From positions 62,001-126,000 of the IMG/VR virus record IMGVR_UViG_3300042922_000643: DNA of 64,000 nt; one strand, given 5' to 3'. Positions within the stretch are counted from its first letter, which is position 1, and each line of letters opens with the position of its first letter. The translations under genes were made by a program, and so were the position numbers. The notes below the pieces were generated by a model. The model was not told the origin of the DNA. It ran no database searches and saw nothing but the letters and a program-made list of their open reading frames with translations. Below, piece after piece: positions 34,711 through 64,000 of this stretch.

Positions 34711-36447
34711 CTAATAGCTCACTTTATAGATTCCCTTAGGCCAAAATGGGCTATTGGAATAGTACCATGCTAAGATCTCATCGCTAGTTCGCGCTATCTT
34801 GTCGATCCTTAACTCGTCGAAGATATTATTACCCGTATTCTGACCATCAGCCGAGCCGACTGTTAGTATGGAGATTGGAGCTACTACACCGCAAGTTCCT
34901 TTCTGAATGCCGTTGACATACAGCCTTGTTTCTAAGGTGTCGAAGACCACGGCTACATGACTCCAAGTAAACGCAGTAATATCGCCAGGAGATAAGGCTA
35001 TATCTGTGCCTGCTACTCTAAGTCTATAATAATTCTCCGACACTCTCTTCCATAGAATGAAATTATCACTATAGGGACTCTGCCCCATTACCCAATTTAC
35101 AGAGGCTATGTAGTCATCTGTTACTCGTGGCTGCACCCAGAAGGAAATCGTAGAGGGCCTAGTTATCGAAACGGGGTAGTACAATCTTCCATTTGCCCGA
35201 GTTCCATTTACGAAAGAAGTAGCGAAACTCTTTGTCTCCATCTGAGGTTGATAAGCAAAAAAGTCTAGAGAATCTGCCACGGCAGGAGTATGAAACCTGA
35301 TCTGCCGATTCGATGTGCCATTGCTTGTACCGCTACTTTTCTTATATATCCATCCCATGTCTTTCGTGATCGTTCCCGACAATCCATTGATTTGATTAGA
35401 AAGAATTAAGGAAGTAGAACTATTATTCTTAACCCATAAAGATGCTGTACAGGGAACTGAAGCAGTACCAGGACCTACATCCCCGTAATATTTAAGAACA
35501 CTGGTTCCTCCTGAAGCTTGAATGCGGGTTGCATTATTTCCACCGAAGGGATCTGGGTACCCTTGTGTTACTTGAACACTAGATCCGCTGAATGTATTCC
35601 ATCCTGCAAAGGTTGTATTTGGAGCAAGTAGATTGGTTGTCGCTTCTTCTACCGCAATACCTCCACCGTAATATCCTTGTGGACTTAGTGTACTCACTTG
35701 AACTCCTGAGGTCCACTTGGGATTTGTGATCACACCTGCATTTCCTCTTAAAGAGTAGTCTACAGCAAAAGATCCACTCCCCTCATTGAGTTTCCAATAA
35801 CCTACAAGTCCAGGTTCATCCCCTTTAAGTTCAGCAACCATGTCTGTTTGAATCTGATTTTGAGATCTTGCAGTCCTCCACATCATTAGTCTACTTATAG
35901 ATCCATTCCAGTACTGGCTAGTGAGCCTACGTCCGATATTGATGAAGCTGGAACTTGGAAGATTATTAGAGTGCTTTGGCCCACTAAATACTAGAACACC
36001 ATTTTTATACGAGTATACTTTTGTTCCATCACATACCAAAGCGATGTGATCCCACTGAAGACCATCATGGTCGAAGAGGATTGTACCACTAACAAAACCG
36101 CTATCGGTATACCAACGATAGCTAGTTGTAGTATTATCCTTTTCTATCCGAACAGCGGTACCATCTACTCCAGTATCAAAGGTTAGGATATCCGACCATC
36201 CTACGGGGCTATTGTGTTTGATCCAGAAAGAGATCGTAAAAATACTTGACCACATTAGTAGGTTAGGAATTCTCATATAAGAATCGCCTACACCTACGTT
36301 TAAAGCATAAGGATAACCTATAGGTTGTATTCCGCTCAGTACATCATTTTCATTCACGTCGTAATGGGCAAGGAATATAGTATTTTCATCTACGGGAATA
36401 ACCTTATTCTTTAGAGGGAGATTTTGCTCTATATGAGACTGCGTCAT
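34711..36447 (-). CDS. LamG/concanavalin-like and CBM-like virion protein
   Basis: PGLVGYWKLNEGSG, EEATTNLL, QMETKSFATSFVNGTR, FDELRID. Confidence 0.85.
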   Translation of the reverse strand: MTQSHIEQNLPLKNKVIPVDENTIFLAHYDVNENDVLSGIQPIGYPYALNVGVGDSYMRIPNLLMWSSIFTISFWIKHNSPVGWSDILTFDTGVDGTAVRIEKDNTTTSYRWYTDSGFVSGTILFDHDGLQWDHIALVCDGTKVYSYKNGVLVFSGPKHSNNLPSSSFINIGRRLTSQYWNGSISRLMMWRTARSQNQIQTDMVAELKGDEPGLVGYWKLNEGSGSFAVDYSLRGNAGVITNPKWTSGVQVSTLSPQGYYGGGIAVEEATTNLLAPNTTFAGWNTFSGSSVQVTQGYPDPFGGNNATRIQASGGTSVLKYYGDVGPGTASVPCTASLWVKNNSSTSLILSNQINGLSGTITKDMGWIYKKSSGTSNGTSNRQIRFHTPAVADSLDFFAYQPQMETKSFATSFVNGTRANGRLYYPVSITRPSTISFWVQPRVTDDYIASVNWVMGQSPYSDNFILWKRVSENYYRLRVAGTDIALSPGDITAFTWSHVAVVFDTLETRLYVNGIQKGTCGVVAPISILTVGSADGQNTGNNIFDELRIDKIARTSDEILAWYYSNSPFWPKGIYKVSY

Positions 36448-36449
36448 TA

Positions 36450-38309
36450 TTATGCCTCCCCGCTATAGTCCAAGTAGTTATAAAATGGAGCATTACTCTG
36501 GTACCAGGCTAAGACTTCATCATCTGAAGCCCAAGTTGTGTCGATACGTACTTCACTAAATAGACCATTTGTAGGAATTGACGTGGATGACATATAGTCT
36601 TTACCTATAGAAATAGGATAACCTCCGTAGTCTAATACTGGAATTGCTCCTTCAACCTTCATCGTGTTTCGGATTCCATCTTCTTTAAAGACATCAATAG
36701 AAACTTGAGTAGCCTTCCATCTCGCCACAATGAATACCCATTTTTCAACTTCAAGTATGTTAGAAGTATAACCTGAAGAGAACACAGAGCCTGCTACTCC
36801 TGGCATTCCGTATTCAAAATACAATTGATTCGTACCATTCATCTTGGTAATACTCCAACCATTGAATCCATTAGCCCACCTACCTGCTCGTAGAATTACT
36901 GAGAAGCCAGCAAAGATGTTGTTTGGTTTAAACCAGAGGGCTATTGTCCCTTCCTGCTGTCCAATTAGTGGAGAACTATTATACACTAGGGTGCCGCCTG
37001 GTCTAGAGCCATCTACAAAAGATGTAGCAAAGGCTTTTTGTTCAAGCTGTAGTCCTTCAATCTCAATCCAGGACCCTGCCGTATCCCCAAATCCACGAAC
37101 ATAAATATTTGCTCGTGTAGCTCCCGCTGGAGCAGCTGTAGTGAATACGAGCCTCTCGAAGCTGTTAGATTGAGATACAGGGTTACCTGCTACGTCGCCT
37201 CCGATTGAAGCACCTGAGGTGTCCATCCACCTTACTTGGATTAATCCTTTCCCCGCGTGGCTGGATTTAACGTACGCAGATACCGTATAAGTTGCGCCAG
37301 CTATAATTCCTGTTACGGCCTGAATAAAATACAGCGTAGCACTATTCCCAACCGCAGTTATATCAATTCTCTGTATATTGCCTGGAGTGTTCACTCCTGA
37401 TTTAGTCATACGTGTGAATACTCTTCCAGCATCTATTCCATCTCCTGATATCCCGACGGAATAACCTTCTGCTGCTCCGTCTAGATTAGAATCCAGGAAT
37501 ACTGGATTTGTCATTAAATTCGTAGTCGCTTCTTCTATTGCTATAGCTCCAGTAAACTTTCCATCTGTTCGAAGAGTGGCAACAGATCTTCCGTGAGTCC
37601 AGGTACCTGATCCAATAATTATGCCATCATTACCAAAAGAGGAGTGATCACATACTACTGGTCCACCTCCTTCGTTTAATTTCCAGTGGGCAATCAGGCC
37701 TGGTTCTCTTCCTGTTAATTCTGTATTCATTAAGAGCGCTATCTGAGAGGCGGTTCTAGGCATATTCCAAATTCGGATATCTGATAGCTGTCCATTGAAA
37801 AATTGGCCTGTATCTCGTTTGCCAATCCACGCCCCAGGGTTACTCCATGAGTTTACAGTTGTATACGTTGTTTCAACTCCGTTAATAAAGCAGCTGGGAA
37901 TCCCTGTGTTATCATAACTTACAGCAATATGGTTCCACTCACTGTTAATAAAACCTGTAAGATTGGCAGTCCTATTGGCTACAGGACTCATGATGAGGCT
38001 ATTCCCTCCAAAGAACCCAATGGCAAATCCTTGGGGATTCGTAATCATGAGAACACTAGCGGTGGTAATCGTCCACTTAACCCATAACTCAACTGTCATA
38101 TTTGTAGATATACCAAAGTCCTTTATCTCAATATGGGTCCCTGTCCCATCGAATTTGAGCGAACCCATCTCACCATATGGGGATACTTTACTTCCTTGGT
38201 TTAGTCCATAAACTTTGTTGTCATAACTTGCATGAAGGATAGTGCTTTTATTAATAGGCATACTTTGCCCCTTGGTTGCTAGGGTTTGCCCAATATGTGA
38301 TTGTGTCAT
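36450..38309 (-). CDS. LamG and CBM-like virion protein (tandem paralogue of 34711-36447)
   Basis: Same MTQSHI start, PGLIAHWKLNEGGG, EEATTNL, QLEQKAFATSFVDGSR. Confidence 0.85.
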   Translation of the reverse strand: MTQSHIGQTLATKGQSMPINKSTILHASYDNKVYGLNQGSKVSPYGEMGSLKFDGTGTHIEIKDFGISTNMTVELWVKWTITTASVLMITNPQGFAIGFFGGNSLIMSPVANRTANLTGFINSEWNHIAVSYDNTGIPSCFINGVETTYTTVNSWSNPGAWIGKRDTGQFFNGQLSDIRIWNMPRTASQIALLMNTELTGREPGLIAHWKLNEGGGPVVCDHSSFGNDGIIIGSGTWTHGRSVATLRTDGKFTGAIAIEEATTNLMTNPVFLDSNLDGAAEGYSVGISGDGIDAGRVFTRMTKSGVNTPGNIQRIDITAVGNSATLYFIQAVTGIIAGATYTVSAYVKSSHAGKGLIQVRWMDTSGASIGGDVAGNPVSQSNSFERLVFTTAAPAGATRANIYVRGFGDTAGSWIEIEGLQLEQKAFATSFVDGSRPGGTLVYNSSPLIGQQEGTIALWFKPNNIFAGFSVILRAGRWANGFNGWSITKMNGTNQLYFEYGMPGVAGSVFSSGYTSNILEVEKWVFIVARWKATQVSIDVFKEDGIRNTMKVEGAIPVLDYGGYPISIGKDYMSSTSIPTNGLFSEVRIDTTWASDDEVLAWYQSNAPFYNYLDYSGEA

Positions 38310-38357: not shown

Positions 38358-38386
38358 GTCGTAACCTATATGATCTTTCTGTGCAA
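38358..38386 (-). promoter_or_regulatory. Candidate late promoter followed by a leader hairpin
   Basis: TTGCAC-N17-TACGAC (GGTTACGAC); downstream AGGAGGGA/TCCCTCCT hairpin. Confidence 0.55.
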
Positions 38387-56900: not shown

Positions 56901-58564
56901 ATATTGATCGTCATCTTGATATCATCGTTATCCTTATTCATTAAGGCGCGAAGGATACCGCAGTTTGAGATTACGATAATACCCTCATCGTAAATAGACC
57001 GAGTAATTACCGCAGGGTCATTATTCTGATACTTCACAATCGTAGTCCAAAGACTTAAGCTTTCACCGTCACCAAACACAATCTTTGGATTCACACCTTC
57101 ATATCCTACTTGAATCTTGGTTTTAGTGAGAAGATACAGACGTTCAACTGCTGAGCGCTCAATAGAATACGGGCTATGATTGTCTAAATCTACGGTGTTA
57201 ATTCCATACGATTTTGGACCTGTAGAAGATTCTGTAGTGGAGAATGATACACTAGTCAGAAAGCGACCAAGATCTAGTCGGTTTGCACCAGCGCCAGCAT
57301 TATCGATCCATAGACGACCACCATTTTGAAGATAAGTACGAATCGTATCACTATAAAGAGAGACGTCAGCAACTCCATATCCTGTAATAATAATAAGATC
57401 GTAATCATTCAAATAATCTGAAGGCATAGACAGATCCGTGATCCAATACTGAATACTTTTATCTTCTTTCGAAGTACCTACTGGTGGATGTGGATTAACG
57501 AATTCCAAGTATCCAGGTTTGGAGCTGTGCTCATAAATCTTCTTGAGTGCTCCCGTTAAATCCTCAGCATTGAACACACTATCATTTAGATAGACTAATC
57601 CAACATTCAAGTATCCCGTGTGTGTAGTATCCAGCTTCGTACGTAAACGACCTTTGATACGGTAGGAAAATTGATGTGCGGGTCTGGTTGTATTATCTGC
57701 AATAATGACCTGGCTTGGTGAATATACTTGGAATTTTTGATCGTCTGTTTCAACAATCGAATATGTCTTCTCGCTTAAAGAAGAAGACCATTCTCCATTT
57801 ATTTTTCGATTCTCTAGAATGTCTTCCATATCTTCCTTCGGAATTTCTGTGAAAAATGGATAGGCATTCAAGACTTCTACAGAGTCACTAATGTGAGATC
57901 CATTTGTATTGTACTTCTCATAACGAATCAAGTAGCTCTCTTCAGACGATCCCTGGAAGTTAGTATATATAAAAATACGATATGCATTCGCTGGGATACC
58001 AACGCCCGATTGTTTAATCAATTGGATCTTATAACGAAGAGAGCTGTCTATAGCTGTGCCATCAAGTTTTGTTACTCGAATTTTGTTTCCAAGATACAGA
58101 AGATTGTCTCTATTAGTAGCCTGAGAATAATCCATAATGTCCGTGATTGGTTTCTCAGTGTACCCACCAGTGTAGTATGCCACAGCAGCTCCTGTCGCAT
58201 CGAATAAGCCCTTTATCTCCGCTCTGTAGTATAGTGGAACTGGAGAATCTTGAGCGCTCTTAGGGGCTGAGAATTCGTCTGTGAGGGTGATGTTCTTTGT
58301 TGGTGCATAGTATGGCTTATTAAGCTCGCGCAACAGAAACGTATCATCTGGGAATACCAGCGTATCTCCCACATTTGAACTCAATGTGTTCTCTACGATT
58401 TGTCCTGACATATCTGTAATCAGCAGGTTTTTAGACGGGCTAATTTCAGGAGTGTGGACATAAGCTAGATTTACGCTATTAGAAGGGACTTTATTCCCTA
58501 CACGAATCGTATAGCCAAGGTCTTCTCCGCCCTGATCAATACGATCCTCATGATTCTTTGTCAT
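53984..58564 (-). CDS. Large virion structural protein with GATase-like/DUF4159-like and CBM-like domains
   Basis: YDLIIITGYG...IRTYLQNGGRLWIDN; NNDFE...VYMDYVEM CBM-like; repeated IDYE.G.I/V baseplate-type motifs; DARVRGGG. Confidence 0.75.
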   Translation of the reverse strand: MTKNHEDRIDQGGEDLGYTIRVGNKVPSNSVNLAYVHTPEISPSKNLLITDMSGQIVENTLSSNVGDTLVFPDDTFLLRELNKPYYAPTKNITLTDEFSAPKSAQDSPVPLYYRAEIKGLFDATGAAVAYYTGGYTEKPITDIMDYSQATNRDNLLYLGNKIRVTKLDGTAIDSSLRYKIQLIKQSGVGIPANAYRIFIYTNFQGSSEESYLIRYEKYNTNGSHISDSVEVLNAYPFFTEIPKEDMEDILENRKINGEWSSSLSEKTYSIVETDDQKFQVYSPSQVIIADNTTRPAHQFSYRIKGRLRTKLDTTHTGYLNVGLVYLNDSVFNAEDLTGALKKIYEHSSKPGYLEFVNPHPPVGTSKEDKSIQYWITDLSMPSDYLNDYDLIIITGYGVADVSLYSDTIRTYLQNGGRLWIDNAGAGANRLDLGRFLTSVSFSTTESSTGPKSYGINTVDLDNHSPYSIERSAVERLYLLTKTKIQVGYEGVNPKIVFGDGESLSLWTTIVKYQNNDPAVITRSIYDEGIIVISNCGILRALMNKDNDDIKMTINMILGIAEENYVTTPWMREYVYHRDNLFKQEYNDGDRSVYIDDRSDMDSTQIVAKKILNKSIRDALIPYMPSSYYKAKGIFKTEVQADSQVVVTNNDFEIGSYDSTTATAVTSWTNTNLNAISGWSTNLGLGTATFEHISNISERGEKALKITTVTEGAAYWSSSVPQLPLGSYRSSAWIKTSNVSSSGATIQIRKANGEILATGNLIIGDRDWTKVEVNFGLTEVTDIEIRIGLLTSGQGTVYMDYVEMYNIGSVYMTPDNDGSSALYAYAVKPKGDTFDLKTEGFSSADVTTYDPTVSFYCIIKSFVYKWDNTLARYIREYGNYSRKKMDIRRSDGIVTIDLLTTLLPDLKAGAEWANQDRIFFEVTVDPVDDRGENAFVNVAFFNKKTGVYFYSTSGENLIGYSELMAGTARLEVVVQAWADYYTIRATKRRYATKPQGDERIYLTYPATVDERDPWLPRVHNGSFTKDSLSYAEYDEFSTAYATKQFGTHRYSLPEYDRQIFKPGQPFRRIYKEICEYVDDTTVRVQNSPLYIQQGTSSGEILTKMDGETAKIFKALSGNWVKTVPPVVLSDTNGNGVFINYVGEYDIDYEGGRIILEETAPGRIMVDYTYNNIDLRKRTYSNGRVKREMLKTTDKKTFVSTHENWLLYPSPVIYRIPEGSTNDQDHIADINTYQINYDEGTVEFLEDVNESVYIDYLYSVDKIVTIKDYDTQSGLLYLNTPISFKDEIYCSYSYEENFVEYNGYYDENLEKYMYLDLNPSEGHYCTLPVIRNGELTGVPILSYEEVPTSKLMNKEVYIYIVPQSNSFGDTNPYTIRHCYSKAEWDQIRKSMPGIALLIGVAQLREHTNVNQATVLDARVRGGGVKESLSKDVLKKKNPLVVNHWDMGPWDGQAYYSNGVIILNLPNSILKINGGQFDEQQVIDILKKYVAYGVYYIIEYVDPVTTTDPVESTLMDGENTLDGTINMGG

Positions 58565-58579
58565 CTTTGACCCACCTCT

Positions 58580-61138
58580 TTAGCCATTTAGTCTATACCA
58601 GTTCTGTATTGCTAGATACTTATTATAAAGGCTTGTCGTCAGCTTGTTGTTATTTAGCCATACAATTTCTTGTATATTTATTAATCCATCCTCATTAAGG
58701 TCGAGCAAGGCTCCAAGCCCATTAGAAAGATCAGCAGCTTTTGTGTTGATATGATCCGTAACTTTACCCAGGATGTAAACTAGGATTTCTTCCCATTCAG
58801 ATTCTTTTAATGTCTGCTGTCGATCCTCGATCCGCTCAATATTACCATAGAATAACGTCATCGGGATTTGAACACCAAGACCACTGACCTGATCGATCAC
58901 GTTGATATACTCTGGCAGCTCGGAGCTTGCGAATTTATCTTCACTGAGTAGTGGAGCACGATAGCGATATAAATGCCTTCCTGCTTCTTCTCGAACACGA
59001 ATACTTCCTGCATCCGTCTTTGGAAGAACTTGCCCATACTTAGCTACTACACTAAGCTTTACATTACTTGCGAAGTTTCCATTCTGATCTAGTGGTTCAA
59101 TACTGATTGCCGACTCTGAAACTCCATCTGCAAACAAGAAGTTTGGAGAGGCTTTCACTCGAAAGACGGAGGTGTTCCCTGGTGTCTTCGTGATGTAAAG
59201 GAAACCTTGATGATTTGGGTTAAGCAATGGATTCAGTTCTATCATCGTAGCCAGCTTCTCTTCAGAATAGCGATTCCCTTCATAGGTAACTTCTACAGGT
59301 TTACCATCATGCTTACCTACAGTGACACGGAAAGAATCAGGCTGCTCAATATTGAAATCTACTGTATAAGCATCTTCTGGCTGATAAGATACGAAGAGAG
59401 GTTTACCTCTAAGTTCTTTCTTTTGCTCCGCAGTTAATGTCAGTAGAATTTTATTATTATCCACTGTATAGGGGTCTCCAACAATTGCACCTGATTGGTC
59501 CTTCACCTGGATTTTGAAGTTTTCATTTTCGATATCAGGATAACCAACTCGGATGTAGTCAGAAGTCCCGTCATAAGGAACGTACTCCTCATTGTATGTT
59601 CGGTATTCTCCAGAGATAGGGTCGAAGAAAGAGACTTTACGCATTGGCGTGCCATCTTCTTTCTGTACAATCACAGGTGACCCATAAGCAGGAGAAGGTG
59701 TAATCTCGATAATTGATTTATTAAAGCTCCCAATAGCATGATCAAACGTAGCCCGAAGAATCATCTGATCTATATTCAGAATCGGATTTTCAGAAGAATA
59801 TATTTTTAGAATATCGACTTCTGTTATTACCTTCGAGAAAATGATCAAGTCATCAATTGCCCCTGTGAATACAGAATTATGGAGACTACTGTGACCAATG
59901 CGAATAACATCAGAAGCTCCTAAGAATGTCTGGACAGCTGTATTGGCTTGGCGCACGCTATTCACCGTAAGGGACATACCATGCTCACTCCAAGTGATTG
60001 CGACGTGATTCCATTCGTTTAGGGTGAGTGATCCTGCGGCAGTTAGAGTAACTCCTTGATATTTAAAAGCGATGCCTAATGCTTGCTGACTAACCGAGAG
60101 CTCTCCGTTTGTGTCTCCATATTCTAAGATCGCAGAGGTACCTTCAGTTAGTGGATACATCCACAGACTAGCTGATCCCTCTTTACTGTTAATATTCTCT
60201 TTCGAGGGGTATGTCAGAAAGGAGGCTTCTCTCGATGCGCTATTCACAAGATCTTCGTTATGTATATACCCTGTGCTATCTTCACCCTTTTCAAGTTGCA
60301 CATTATTCACCTGGATCTCGTCTGTCGCAGAGAACCGAAGTTTGATTTGAGTACAGCCCGTAGAGGTTGTAAAAGTGTAGCTTCGACTCACCCATTCCTC
60401 ACTTGCTGAAAGAACAGAGCTATGTGTAGCTTGGGTTCCATCTACTTCAATCAGTTCAGCCTTTCCGCCACCTGATAAGGAGAAGGATAATGTATAGGGT
60501 TGTAGAGGAAGAACAGTAATAAGCTGCTCTAAATACACACTATCTGTTCCATCACTCTTGATGTGAAGATAGGCATCGTCGTTATCTAGCTTTTGAATAT
60601 CGACAAGAGCTCCAGACACACTATCGACGTTCGAAGTCCACCCCTCTGGGAATTCGGACTTGATCTCGATGGAATCGCACTTTGTCCCAGCTTCCCCATA
60701 CGCAGCGACCTTGCCGCTTTGAAGACCGTTATATTCAATATTGAAGATCAGGCTACCATCCAAATAAACTTTATAGTTTGTTCTTTTGACTTGACAGACT
60801 AATTGGTAAGTTTGTCCAACTACTAAGTCAGGGAGATTACTATTCTCTGCAAGATCAAGTTTGTTTGTTGATATCTGCGCACTTAAACGAGCAATCGTTT
60901 TAGACCCCGAGAAAGAGAGTCCAGAAAGATCAGCGCTTGTATATGAGCCTATGATACAGGAGAGGTATGTAATCTCTGAATTGAAACGTGGGATAATACC
61001 GAATTCTCCACCCTGATAAATCATGTCAGCTGTGAGAGTTAAATCTTTCCATTTACTATCACCAACAGCATAGTAGCCGTCAGTGTCCCATATTAATTTT
61101 CCATTGTCATTATGCGTATCCGCTAGAGTATACAGCAT
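58580..61138 (-). CDS. Virion structural protein with CBM-like, LamG, Ig(Big_1)-like and EF-hand/dockerin-like motifs
   Basis: NNVQLEKG, EWNHVAITW...IDDLIIF, LFADGVSESAISI, DLNEDGLINIQE; start may be 61138, 61159 or 61165. Confidence 0.8.
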   Translation of the reverse strand: MLYTLADTHNDNGKLIWDTDGYYAVGDSKWKDLTLTADMIYQGGEFGIIPRFNSEITYLSCIIGSYTSADLSGLSFSGSKTIARLSAQISTNKLDLAENSNLPDLVVGQTYQLVCQVKRTNYKVYLDGSLIFNIEYNGLQSGKVAAYGEAGTKCDSIEIKSEFPEGWTSNVDSVSGALVDIQKLDNDDAYLHIKSDGTDSVYLEQLITVLPLQPYTLSFSLSGGGKAELIEVDGTQATHSSVLSASEEWVSRSYTFTTSTGCTQIKLRFSATDEIQVNNVQLEKGEDSTGYIHNEDLVNSASREASFLTYPSKENINSKEGSASLWMYPLTEGTSAILEYGDTNGELSVSQQALGIAFKYQGVTLTAAGSLTLNEWNHVAITWSEHGMSLTVNSVRQANTAVQTFLGASDVIRIGHSSLHNSVFTGAIDDLIIFSKVITEVDILKIYSSENPILNIDQMILRATFDHAIGSFNKSIIEITPSPAYGSPVIVQKEDGTPMRKVSFFDPISGEYRTYNEEYVPYDGTSDYIRVGYPDIENENFKIQVKDQSGAIVGDPYTVDNNKILLTLTAEQKKELRGKPLFVSYQPEDAYTVDFNIEQPDSFRVTVGKHDGKPVEVTYEGNRYSEEKLATMIELNPLLNPNHQGFLYITKTPGNTSVFRVKASPNFLFADGVSESAISIEPLDQNGNFASNVKLSVVAKYGQVLPKTDAGSIRVREEAGRHLYRYRAPLLSEDKFASSELPEYINVIDQVSGLGVQIPMTLFYGNIERIEDRQQTLKESEWEEILVYILGKVTDHINTKAADLSNGLGALLDLNEDGLINIQEIVWLNNNKLTTSLYNKYLAIQNWYRLNG

Positions 61139-61172
61139 AAACACCTTCTTTCCAGACATTCTCACTACTAAA

Positions 61173-61201
61173 CTTGTAACCTATACCTCTGAATAAATCA
61201 A
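61173..61201 (-). promoter_or_regulatory. Candidate late promoter
   Basis: TTGATT-N17-TACAAG (GGTTACAAG) right after a terminator. Confidence 0.6.
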
Positions 61202-61202
61202 T

Positions 61203-61228
61203 AAAGAAAAGCCACCCTGAGGTGGCTT
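61203..61228 (-). terminator. Rho-independent terminator
   Basis: AAGCCACC-TCAG-GGTGGCTT followed by TTCTTT. Confidence 0.85.
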
Positions 61229-64000
61229 AAAACGTGAACTTTTGCACAGTAGAAGTCTTCTTAACATCGAAACCTGAGTTGCGAACAAGGTTCTCTGCGG
61301 CAGGCTGGAACTTCGCAGCATTCGAGTATTTGCCAGGAACATACTCTATATTCCCTGATCTAGCCATTTCAGATTCCGTAGGCGCTACAGTAATCGGTTC
61401 GCTAAATAAGTAATATTCTTCACTGCCCAGATAATAAAACCCTGTCTGGATTGTCGGGAACCAGTTGTCTTTAGGAACTCTATCCTGTAAGGAGCCATTA
61501 GCATATCCTATACCTGAATCATAATCGATCCATGTCTTCACCCAAAGGTCATTATCCTCGATAATGTACTCTTTGTTTTTGATCTCTTCATCTTCTGCGC
61601 CTTCCCACTCTGACATCGAAGGAAGAGCTGCTCTGAAGTCCACACCTGGAGAGCATGTGCCTGTGAAGGCTTTAACGTCAGGAGATCTCCAAATTCGATC
61701 TACACCGCTTTCCTCTTGGTAGTCACAACCAATCGTAATTGTAACCTGCTTTGGTTTTAAGCATTTATAGGATACATAGTACGCTTCGCCGCTGTCAGGC
61801 TCTCGACTCATTCCTTCTGCATAAGACCAAGAGATATAGTTTCCACTAAGATCATAATCCACTCCGCTAATGTAGTTTGAAGCCTGTACTACATCCGTGG
61901 CCGAGTCCCATATCCCAATAACCTCAATGACTTTTGCATTATTCAAAAGATCTTTACCGTTCTCTAAGGAGCCGCGGATAATTTTCTCTTTTGTGATAAC
62001 GACTTCCTCTTCTAGAATCTTAAGCGTTCGAACAAAGACGCGATTGTCAGGGACAATAATATCCTTCTGTTTTACACTGTTATAAATAACATCTATCTGG
62101 TAAGGCTGAGCGGATACGATAGCTGCTGGATCGATTCTTGGGAGAATAATCCTAGCAGGAATAATAATTGTCTTTCCAATAGCGACTGGAGTGGTTAAAT
62201 CCCCATTTGCAGATCGCAAATCGTATTCATCGACTTGGAATAATGCAGCGATGCTTTCGTAGGTATCTCCGTTTTTTGTAACATACTTCATCTCGACAGA
62301 GTCTCCCGATTCTGGGGTGACGTGGGTTCGAATATAGTCACCACGAAGATCGTTAAGATTAACTGTGCCTGAATAGATTTTTTCTTCGGAAACCCAATCT
62401 ACAAGGCCCCAAGTCGAATCTATAGAAACGAGTACAATTACCTTATCACTGAAAGTATTTGGGTTCCCGTTAATGATTTTATTATGGGCAGAAATTTCTG
62501 TAACATTTGTTTTCGGTGTATTGATCTGTTCTGAACTCCAATACATGATAACATTATTATTAACCGTACCATTGTTGGGAGCTCCTGTCTCAGGATTGTA
62601 CCATCCAGACATGAGGAAGTATCGATATTCTTTGGTATCATCCAGGGATGGTGTGAAAGAAGGAAGAAGTTCCATCTCGTCACCTTGGTTGATTACAACA
62701 GAGCCACCGCCATACTGGAAATGTTTAAAGACACCTGTTGTGGTTGCGTCTTTCGGCGTTGTATCTACGTTAATTCTAGCCCAAATCCTATCGTTACGAG
62801 AACTGGTATAGTTTGGACGCGAGATAGATGGAGGCAAATTGTTAGTACTCTCTAGATAAAGAACGATATCTCTTGGACGCTCGGTTCTATCTTCAAGATA
62901 ATACAGAGGGGTTGTCGCTTCCGCTGGAGCTGTGAAGCTTAGTGTGCTCATATCAAGAATCATTTGTTCTCCTGTATTTAAATTATCTACAGCAGAGAAC
63001 TTGTATTTGTCTATGGATTTTCGTTCTTCATAGATTAAATTTGAAGTCAGCTGAATCGAGTCAACAACTGGCGTCGCCTTATCTACCCGTTTACTTAGGG
63101 AGATCTTAATCCGATAAGGCTTGTTTGCTACACGGCGACCAATCAAACTTCGATCTGATATATATTTGGGTTGATCAAGAGAAAGTAGCACGTTGTCTTG
63201 TTCATCAAGAAATTCATAAAGAATACGAACGCTCGATTCATCCAGAGGCATATAAGAAGTGTCATCCCAGCTTTCCCAATGGTCAATACGCAGATTAGGG
63301 TTTACGCTGGCGGGGTTAATTAAAGAGGTAATGATATACCCTTCATTAAATCCTTCCTTGATGCGTAGTCGATGTGTTGACTTTTTGTATGGAGCACTCA
63401 TTGCTGAATAGACCGTACTTGATGTTGTAGCCGCAGACCGACTACGTATAGTCAAGTTGGTTCCTGTTGGAACTGTAGATGTCCAGTCGATAGAAACTGT
63501 TTCTTTAAACGTGGTTCCTGTCGGGGTTGCGACATCAATCATGTTGATAGTCCCCGTCCAGCTACCATCTTCAGTACGATTGCTGGTGTCTCCAGCGTAT
63601 ACATCAAGTTCTTCTACGATTGGCGATTTATCATTATCAGAAGAAGCAAGCCATAGTCTGATCTTTACGTGATCCTTACCAGCATAGTTGGGAGAAGTAG
63701 CTGTTAGAGTATAGGCATCAGTACGTCCTGATATAGCTGTTTTTGTAAGTGGGATTTTAACATAAGAAGTATACGTTCCACCACTACCTGTTTTTGCTTG
63801 AATCTCAAGAGTAAACGCGCAGACCCGAGCTTGAATAGAACGAAGCTGCAAAGTCTTATTCGCTGCGTTATCACTTCCCAAGGAGATCTCAACAACCTGA
63901 TTGCCATAAGCCAACTCGTCAATTACATACTGCTTGTTAGTGATAGATACGCTCACACTTGAAAATGTGTAGTTAGTAATCACACTTGCTGTTCCAGGCT
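61227..64000 (-). CDS. Large structural protein with LysM domain (5'-truncated by the window edge)
   Basis: Frame is open to 64000; LysM YVTKNGDTYESIA..F......LRSAN......GKTIIIP at about 62160-62290. Confidence 0.8.
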   Translation of the reverse strand, partial: PGTASVITNYTFSSVSVSITNKQYVIDELAYGNQVVEISLGSDNAANKTLQLRSIQARVCAFTLEIQAKTGSGGTYTSYVKIPLTKTAISGRTDAYTLTATSPNYAGKDHVKIRLWLASSDNDKSPIVEELDVYAGDTSNRTEDGSWTGTINMIDVATPTGTTFKETVSIDWTSTVPTGTNLTIRSRSAATTSSTVYSAMSAPYKKSTHRLRIKEGFNEGYIITSLINPASVNPNLRIDHWESWDDTSYMPLDESSVRILYEFLDEQDNVLLSLDQPKYISDRSLIGRRVANKPYRIKISLSKRVDKATPVVDSIQLTSNLIYEERKSIDKYKFSAVDNLNTGEQMILDMSTLSFTAPAEATTPLYYLEDRTERPRDIVLYLESTNNLPPSISRPNYTSSRNDRIWARINVDTTPKDATTTGVFKHFQYGGGSVVINQGDEMELLPSFTPSLDDTKEYRYFLMSGWYNPETGAPNNGTVNNNVIMYWSSEQINTPKTNVTEISAHNKIINGNPNTFSDKVIVLVSIDSTWGLVDWVSEEKIYSGTVNLNDLRGDYIRTHVTPESGDSVEMKYVTKNGDTYESIAALFQVDEYDLRSANGDLTTPVAIGKTIIIPARIILPRIDPAAIVSAQPYQIDVIYNSVKQKDIIVPDNRVFVRTLKILEEEVVITKEKIIRGSLENGKDLLNNAKVIEVIGIWDSATDVVQASNYISGVDYDLSGNYISWSYAEGMSREPDSGEAYYVSYKCLKPKQVTITIGCDYQEESGVDRIWRSPDVKAFTGTCSPGVDFRAALPSMSEWEGAEDEEIKNKEYIIEDNDLWVKTWIDYDSGIGYANGSLQDRVPKDNWFPTIQTGFYYLGSEEYYLFSEPITVAPTESEMARSGNIEYVPGKYSNAAKFQPAAENLVRNSGFDVKKTSTVQKFTF

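Follow-up and report, generated by a model that had tools for sequence, protein, structure and literature searches.

Donor-strand complementation in chaperone-usher systems (PapD-PapE, FimC-FimH) completes an incomplete beta-sandwich with strands of another polypeptide, and gene fission/fusion or 'Rosetta stone' pairs are routinely used to predict that two proteins interact physically. Among phages, the closest structural precedent comes from the baseplate of phage 812, in which gaps in the sheets of one protein are filled by linkers of another, a scaffold (PMC13433997); in Herelleviridae baseplates, the tripod trimers are held by docking loops (PMC13433997). Here we describe two genes in a 64,000-nucleotide stretch of IMG/VR virus record IMGVR_UViG_3300042922_000643 (the window; bases 62001-126000 of one contig of 251,543 bp) that encode a LysM/DUF4815 baseplate protein (P0015) and, next downstream, a virion protein (P0003). 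Sequence comparison and complex prediction make it probable that these genes are the halves of one nested LamG[CBM] module, which would be re-formed in trans.

The Pfam matches of P0015 comprise DUF4815 (E 3.5e-13; 49.2 bits, cut-off 30) and LysM (E 8e-6; 26.1 bits, cut-off 20.9). Its sole significant fold match in Foldseek was a baseplate chain of Staphylococcus phage 812 (9eui_Q, E 3e-6), and a profile search reached 9euf_0, a DUF4815 protein (E 2e-12). P0015 is thus a DUF4815/tripod-type baseplate protein with a LysM domain; the DUF4815 part is its only region with a solved relative, that from the phage 812 baseplate, and the likeness spans ~100 residues. That the matched chain is the tripod protein we infer from the published description of a LysM-like hook domain, not from a chain-by-chain comparison. 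As the first-pass annotation had noted, the protein ends with a piece (G-K-Y..AAKFQ / NLVRNSGF) that matches the opening of a LamG-CBM unit, followed by 13 residues before the stop. In the AlphaFold 2 (AF2) monomer, residues 760-959 folded confidently and the last ~80 did not: predicted local distance difference test scores (pLDDT) were ~40-65 in the ~49-residue tail and below 50 over the final 26 residues. The segment at 960-981, which is very conserved, was likewise unfolded.

The tail is conserved. A search with the C-terminal 318 residues of the LysM protein collected 53 homologues (28-61% identity), ~50 of which have the same tail, so chance does not account for the match. The N, N, S, and F of NLVRNSGF are nearly invariant among them, and mean column conservation was 0.59 in the tail versus 0.58 in the preceding folded domain. 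Twenty-seven of the 53 terminate exactly at the last tail residue, and most others run 1-18 residues longer. Two variants were seen at this end. In P0018, P0019, P0022, P0028, P0031, P0045, P0055, P0059, and the upstream proteins of loci L005 and L006, 12-18 extra residues follow the tail and share the ending ..(A/E)(G/E)LG(I/L)T.; in P0021, P0024, P0026, and P0027, the last tail strand is replaced by ..W(R/K).(F/Y)N.. and the proteins end in ..LGK or LGT.

A search for fused orthologues, suggested in the first-pass annotation, found P0122, a 1435-residue protein that carries DUF4815 and came up with the C-terminal half of P0003. Its first 950 residues align with the LysM protein as far as residue 1011 (E 2e-41, 7e-39) and its residues 955-1432 match P0003 306-772 (E 1e-65). 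The ~4 residues that separate the two local alignments fall within one ordinary LamG start, in which the two LamG strands of the tail run via a ~4-residue turn into the strand matching P0003 306 onward. P0122 has the baseplate-gene neighbours that elsewhere flank the two separate genes, which makes the pair a gene fission/fusion case. A second fused copy (P0127) is 99% identical at the junction, with one residue different nearby, and comes from a separate dataset, so the fusion is not an assembly error; an IMG/VR scan with the fused junction returned no further fused forms. Because the LamG domain of the family includes both tail strands, as P0122 and P0127 demonstrate, the LamG of P0003 is not complete alone. 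The fused form has neither the CBM66-like domain nor the CBM of P0003, nor the NLV and TVQK strands of the tail.

Minimally split relatives place the break at the same point. In the distant loci L012 and L013, the upstream protein stops as soon as the two LamG strands are complete, T.P.KNNI, the equivalent of the SFLTYPSK strand of P0003, is the exact start of the next protein, and CBM parts are absent from both. In L013 the two genes, read in different frames, share 8 nt precisely at the LamG hairpin, which suggests translational coupling. The divergent loci L011 and L016 retain CBM domains in the partner together with an NL-type tail strand. Overall, tail type matched partner architecture in 16 of 16 loci: CBM-type tail strands and a partner N-domain/CBM co-occurred in 13, and both were absent in three.

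P0003 consists of a CBM66/DUF1080-like jelly roll, a CBM-like sandwich, a conserved linker, a LamG body, and a conserved post-LamG segment. The first-pass annotation held that this protein carries the rest of the split unit. That was borne out for the linker motif (QLEKG..STGYIHN..SRE.SFLTYPSK) and the LamG; a complete 165-residue CBM66-like jelly roll, however, precedes the CBM remainder. This N-terminal domain matches a solved CBM66 fold (4b1m_C; Foldseek TM score 0.73, root-mean-square deviation 3.1, 164 columns), and its profile match to levanase was weak (E 0.22). The CBM-like sandwich begins at PEGW, past the position of a CBM first strand. Laminin_G_3 (PF13385) covers residues 308-443 (67.3 bits, cut-off 27.6; E 2e-18; profile positions 7-150 of 151), and sequence matches of the LamG include PTX3 pentraxin and an S-layer LamG. 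The LamG of P0003 starts with the strand that follows the two carried in the LysM-protein tail, which themselves fall N-terminal to the region covered by the Pfam profile. Homologue searches with the N-terminal half gave only nine proteins because LamG words saturate the word search; the C-terminal half gave 65 and brought up the fused form. Among the 62 members aligned, column conservation was higher in the linker (0.57) and the post-LamG segment (0.66) than in the CBM (0.46) or LamG (0.45). The KLEB27-3 and WH1 homologues carry structural-protein annotation. Linker pLDDT was ~30 in the AF2 monomer, a model built from eight sequences whose confidence is moderate (pLDDT 66) and which cannot by itself show an open edge. 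A conserved EF-hand- or dockerin-type loop (D.N.DG.I...E) is found at residues ~810-830, near the C-terminus of P0003; four phages share its L812, N815, D817, G818, I820, and W827 without change, and its role may be calcium binding or docking.

Following a suggestion of the first-pass annotation, the complex of P0003 residues 1-560 (62 aligned rows) with the last 78 residues of the LysM protein (960-1037; 53 rows) was predicted. The interaction score derived from predicted aligned errors (ipSAE) was 0.81, 0.83, and 0.81 for the true pair, against 0.00 for the best of three controls. Partner pLDDT was 67-72 in the true pair and 30 with an unrelated chain 1, and chain 1 reached 82-84 versus 69-70 with unrelated partners. 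Predicted contacts agreed to at least 82% between runs. On the LysM side the interface was confined to residues 989-1037; on the P0003 side it comprised 154-167 (the last CBM66-like strand), 277-284 (the last CBM strand), all of 289-313, parts of the LamG, 451-452, and 463-466. The tightest predicted pairs were N1017-V1019 with Q281-E283 and T1031-K1034 with E158-S161: the strand N1017-L1018-V1019 against Q281-L282-E283 had the lowest expected error (0.3-0.5 A), and the last tail strand was paired with residues 158-161, in the final strand of the CBM66-like domain. In the model, the arrangement is that expected if the tail supplies the missing CBM first strand and the missing LamG strands.

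The same phage encodes two in-cis paralogues of 578 and 619 residues, in which the nested pattern described by the first-pass annotation was present, with motifs and open reading frames (ORFs) where claimed. Each runs from a first LamG through a G-K-F..A..EE-ATTNL lead-in, a CBM-like sandwich, and QLE.K..ATSF to the remainder of a second LamG, and each has two Laminin_G_3 stretches; the CBM_4_9 match of the 619-residue protein was weak (17 bits versus a cut-off of 25.9). The paralogues resemble the split pair in lead-in, CBM position, and QLE..ATS(F/Y) exit into LamG, and P0003 residues 270-342 align with the post-CBM junction of the 619-residue protein (BLASTP E 3e-5). They differ in being complete in one chain, in having an extra N-terminal LamG, and in lacking the CBM66-like domain. 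On the other hand, the suggestion that the ILRATFD strand marks a circular permutation was not adopted, because the fused orthologue also has the equivalent strand after its LamG, which is therefore the normal order of the family; in the model only residues 463-466 of this region touch the tail.

Taken together, these results point to a plug and a socket. The plug would be the ~49-residue tail of the LysM protein, predicted to be unable to fold alone, and the socket would be P0003, which is built of a CBM66-like domain, a CBM-like sandwich, and a LamG and lacks the corresponding strands. The two LamG strands of the tail would lie beside the first strand of the partner LamG, the NLVRNSGF strand beside the last strand of the partner CBM, and the final strand on the edge of the CBM66-like domain; docking would order the conserved linker of the partner and so fasten P0003 to the baseplate. 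As to origin, the loop that links LamG strands three and four seems to tolerate a chain break, as in the two distant relatives, or a nested CBM, as in the in-cis paralogues. In this phage and ~60 relatives, the loop would be both broken and occupied by a nested CBM, and one lineage keeps the unbroken form. The homology, the conservation, the fused and minimally split forms, and the controlled complex prediction are observed results; from these we infer binding within the virion, its stoichiometry, and any receptor-binding role.

The first-pass annotation also placed a terminator and a promoter between the two genes. A strong hairpin with a T-run does lie within the 88-nt spacer, and equivalent hairpins and T-runs follow the LysM gene in relatives. 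The promoter-like element next to it (TTGATT-N13-TATAGGTTA), whose function is predicted, was not called by a sigma-70 consensus scan. As defined here, it occurs once in the 251.5-kb genome versus 0.05 expected, and so is not a general late-promoter consensus; a similar element (a TTG hexamer, then GGTTA) stands at the same site before the LamG gene in nine of 11 upstream regions of relatives. The same TATAGGTTAC core was also found ~50 nt upstream of the start of the 619-residue paralogue, ahead of its ribosome-binding site (RBS), and may be a promoter element common to these genes. Candidate starts for P0003 are GTG 61165, ATG 61159 (used by the public protein cluster; 859 residues), and ATG 61138; ATG 61138, not GTG 61165, is the likely start because AAGAAGG lies 5 nt upstream and homologues agree.

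The LysM and LamG genes are adjacent in the window, in phages Edson and WH1, and in loci L008, L009, L014, and L016. One to four unrelated genes lie between the pair in five of 13 tail-bearing loci of relatives. A single gene intervenes in L004 (95 residues), L005 (248 residues), L006 (434 residues), and KLEB27-3 (a 623-residue beta-helix protein), and four genes do so in L007 (5.6 kb); L011 has one Rep3_N gene. Every unit at this position has its own hairpin/terminator and promoter-like element, so the split is independent of co-translation and of adjacency. Judged from gene order, the gap behaves as a slot for cargo genes; the kinds of cargo seen are a beta-helix enzyme and three others. The 95- and 248-residue slot proteins have their N-terminal region in common.

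Not every reading of these data involves a joint fold. A tail that forms part of the LysM protein's own fold, or of a homo-oligomer such as the end of an intertwined trimer, and that has no specific link to the downstream protein is rather unlikely. Oligomer interfaces are typically predicted poorly in monomers, as are the last ~80 residues here with the conserved 960-981 segment; proteins of the tripod type form trimers (PMC13433997), and adjacency to the LamG gene is not kept. Moreover, the chain of P0023 (769 residues, on a 3-kb contig) goes on beyond the tail, through a Pro-rich linker and an FN3-like stretch to a complete Laminin_G_3 and one more domain. However, in the model only residues 989-1037 contact P0003, with the true pair scoring far above its controls, the fused orthologue places the tail strands within the LamG of the partner, and tail type tracks partner architecture. 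A relic of a broken or recombined ancestral gene, leaving strands without a joint fold and assembly via other surfaces or none, is improbable: the junction is indeed a recombination-prone slot that takes zero to four foreign genes, each with terminator and promoter-like element, and this genome has many LamG and CBM lead-in motifs, but a relic would decay, yet tail positions are nearly invariant across the 53 homologues, the tail is conserved like a folded domain, and the contact segments of the partner are its best-conserved parts. The single ORF of one lineage and the 8-nt overlap in L013 might recall an error or pseudogene, or ORFs joined by read-through, frameshift, or splicing. Such explanations are scarcely credible, given that the terminator and promoter-like arrangement recurs in at least 10 relatives, that whole genes intervene in five, that a strong hairpin stands in the short spacer, and that the downstream gene has its own RBS and a 165-residue N-terminal domain; read-through or frameshift joining and a pseudogene were rejected on the recurrent arrangement, the intervening genes, and the RBS.

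The most economical reading is therefore fragment complementation that would dock P0003 on the C-terminus of the tripod-like protein. The proposal of the first-pass annotation, that a LamG-CBM unit re-formed in trans hooks two virion proteins together, is in this sense supported by conservation, the fused orthologue, and the complex prediction. Several points weigh against it, beginning with the computational nature of all this support. The fused form is known from one lineage, as two near-identical sequences, and two or three evolutionary events may be enough to account for the co-occurrence of tail type and architecture. Since the LysM protein is probably an oligomer, part of its C-terminus may serve self-assembly, and P0023, with domains beyond its tail, shows that the tail need not end the chain. 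The 'CBM-like' label for P0003 166-285 rests on the AF2 fold and the motif position, as this region had no Pfam CBM_4_9 (PF02018) match. Structure predictors pair exposed edge strands readily, and the calibration of the ipSAE mark, reached by 58 of 80 solved complexes and two of 110 mismatched pairs, holds only roughly here because our own alignments were used.

The source genome is that of a jumbo phage of ~42% GC, and the large genes of the window are all on the minus strand (Table 1). Its nearest relatives in protein searches are the Bacillus jumbo myophages vB_BauM_KLEB27-3, Edson, and vB_BceM_WH1, with 0305phi8-36 more distant; these were reached via protein searches only, as a megablast of window positions 58000-62000 against the phage collection gave no match. 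In relatives, a baseplate cluster holds both genes, in the order sheath initiator or baseplate-J-like protein, two to three proteins, VWA protein, LysM/DUF4815 protein, LamG protein, and proteins of ~1500, 62, and ~3000 residues. PHROGs matches for the proteins were uninformative. Literature searches returned nothing relevant on donor-strand or strand complementation in phage baseplates, or on KLEB27-3. A paper on jumbo phage BpSp was set aside, as that phage is unrelated (25.9% GC).

Table 1. Positions of the split LamG-CBM pair, its parts, and related features (window coordinates unless a locus is named)
Feature	Position	Strand	Basis or remark
LysM/DUF4815 baseplate protein gene	61227-64000, extends beyond window	-	Pfam, genome ORF; full protein P0015, 1037 aa
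LysM gene stop codon	61227-61229		
C-terminal tail, proposed plug, residues 989-1037 (~49 aa)	61230-61376	-	Predicted interface, conservation, low monomer pLDDT
Two LamG-type strands in tail, residues 997-1012 (NIEYV, GKY, AAKFQ)	61305-61352	-	Continuity in fused orthologue P0122
CBM first-strand equivalent NLVRNSGF, residues 1017-1024	61269-61292	-	Pairing in complex model, near-invariant positions
Last tail strand TVQKFTF, residues 1031-1037	61230-61250	-	Pairing in complex model; frequent end point
Intrinsic terminator: stem 8 pairs, loop 4, T-run	61199-61228	-	Hairpin scan
Promoter-like element: TTGATT, 13 nt, TATAGGTTA	61177-61201	-	Motif scan
Slot between the two genes	Between 61138 and 61227; L001:7427-9298, L004:5619-5906, L005:5138-5884, L006:4587-5891, L007:384-5910, L011:12767-13591		
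Downstream virion protein gene, P0003, 852 aa	58580-61138	-	ORF, homologues; RBS AAGAAGG at 61144-61150
CBM66/DUF1080-like jelly roll, residues 1-165	60644-61138	-	AF2 pLDDT ~80; Foldseek
CBM-like beta-sandwich, residues 166-285	60284-60643	-	AF2 strands 167-284
Conserved linker, residues 286-319 (..TGYIHN..SRE.SFLTYPSK.NI)	60182-60283	-	Conservation, interface
LamG body, residues 320-450	59789-60181	-	Pfam; AF2 pLDDT 81-90
Conserved post-LamG segment, residues 451-490, ILRATFD at 459-465	59669-59788	-	Conservation 0.66; low confidence in monomer
D.N.DG.I...E loop of P0003	58649-58711		
578-aa LamG-CBM paralogue	34711-36447	-	Motifs, Pfam
619-aa LamG-CBM paralogue	36450-38309	-	Motifs, Pfam
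TATAGGTTAC core upstream of 619-aa paralogue	38361-38370	-	
Overlap of the L013 genes	L013:10495-10502		
Other split pair, P0125/P0126	19939-23146	-	Single genes 0305phi8-36 ORF171, Moorella phage MTATph1 CDS0053

A second pair of genes in the window, P0125/P0126, is a single gene in 0305phi8-36 and in a Moorella phage, and is thus also a fission/fusion case; the 0305phi8-36 product is a virion protein by mass spectrometry. The first-pass annotation had seen in the two splits a general clasp principle of assembly, which this result supports at the gene level only. As a speculation that we hold tentatively, the pair described here could represent a portable, conserved plug-socket standard for the outer baseplate of Bacillus-type jumbo phages, in which the LamG-hairpin break serves as both clasp and landing site, so that receptor-binding cargo might be exchanged without disturbing assembly. 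Domain splitting between genes would then perhaps be a repeated device, in view of the second pair.

To our knowledge, most fibre and receptor-binding proteins of jumbo phages still lack annotation, and it is not known how they attach. Across a family that comprises over 60 phage genomes and contigs, the present proposal offers a concrete rule of attachment, namely that a ~49-residue tail would complete the LamG-CBM module of a partner, and helps annotate which large ORFs are virion neighbours. The tail could also serve as a tag for loading foreign domains onto such baseplates. In this family, a single jelly-roll beta-hairpin occurs both intact and broken, in either case with or without a nested domain; for beta-sandwich fragment complementation, a natural four-state series like this one is, as far as we know, rare.

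Like Rosetta stone pairs, the two proteins described here correspond to a single chain in another genome. Unlike those, they are divided not between domains but within one, at a beta-hairpin that in the paralogues hosts the nested CBM. The likeness to the Herelleviridae baseplates (Staphylococcus phage 812, Listeria phage A511) lies in strand insertion and in the DUF4815 part shared with a phage 812 chain; the solved phage 812 chains have no counterpart of the C-terminal tail or of the LamG/CBM partner, and here, in contrast, one recognisable domain is divided, with the fused orthologue as witness. With chaperone-usher assembly, the split pair would have in common a strand-deficient beta-sandwich completed in trans, joining subunits of an extracellular fibre. 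Strands that the fused orthologue and the in-cis paralogues carry within one chain are missing from the acceptor, P0003; their supply in trans is predicted, by the ipSAE of 0.81 versus 0.00 and the expected pairings. The folds differ, however: the pilin is Ig-like, whereas here a LamG jelly roll with a nested CBM is involved, and in place of one supplied strand there would be about four, over three domains. The donor here, a C-terminal tail, comes from another protein family, there is no sign of a chaperone or of strand exchange, and the setting is a phage baseplate cluster without chaperone or usher genes. Thus, on sequence and model evidence, the split pair would work like donor-strand complementation but is no member of the chaperone-usher system.

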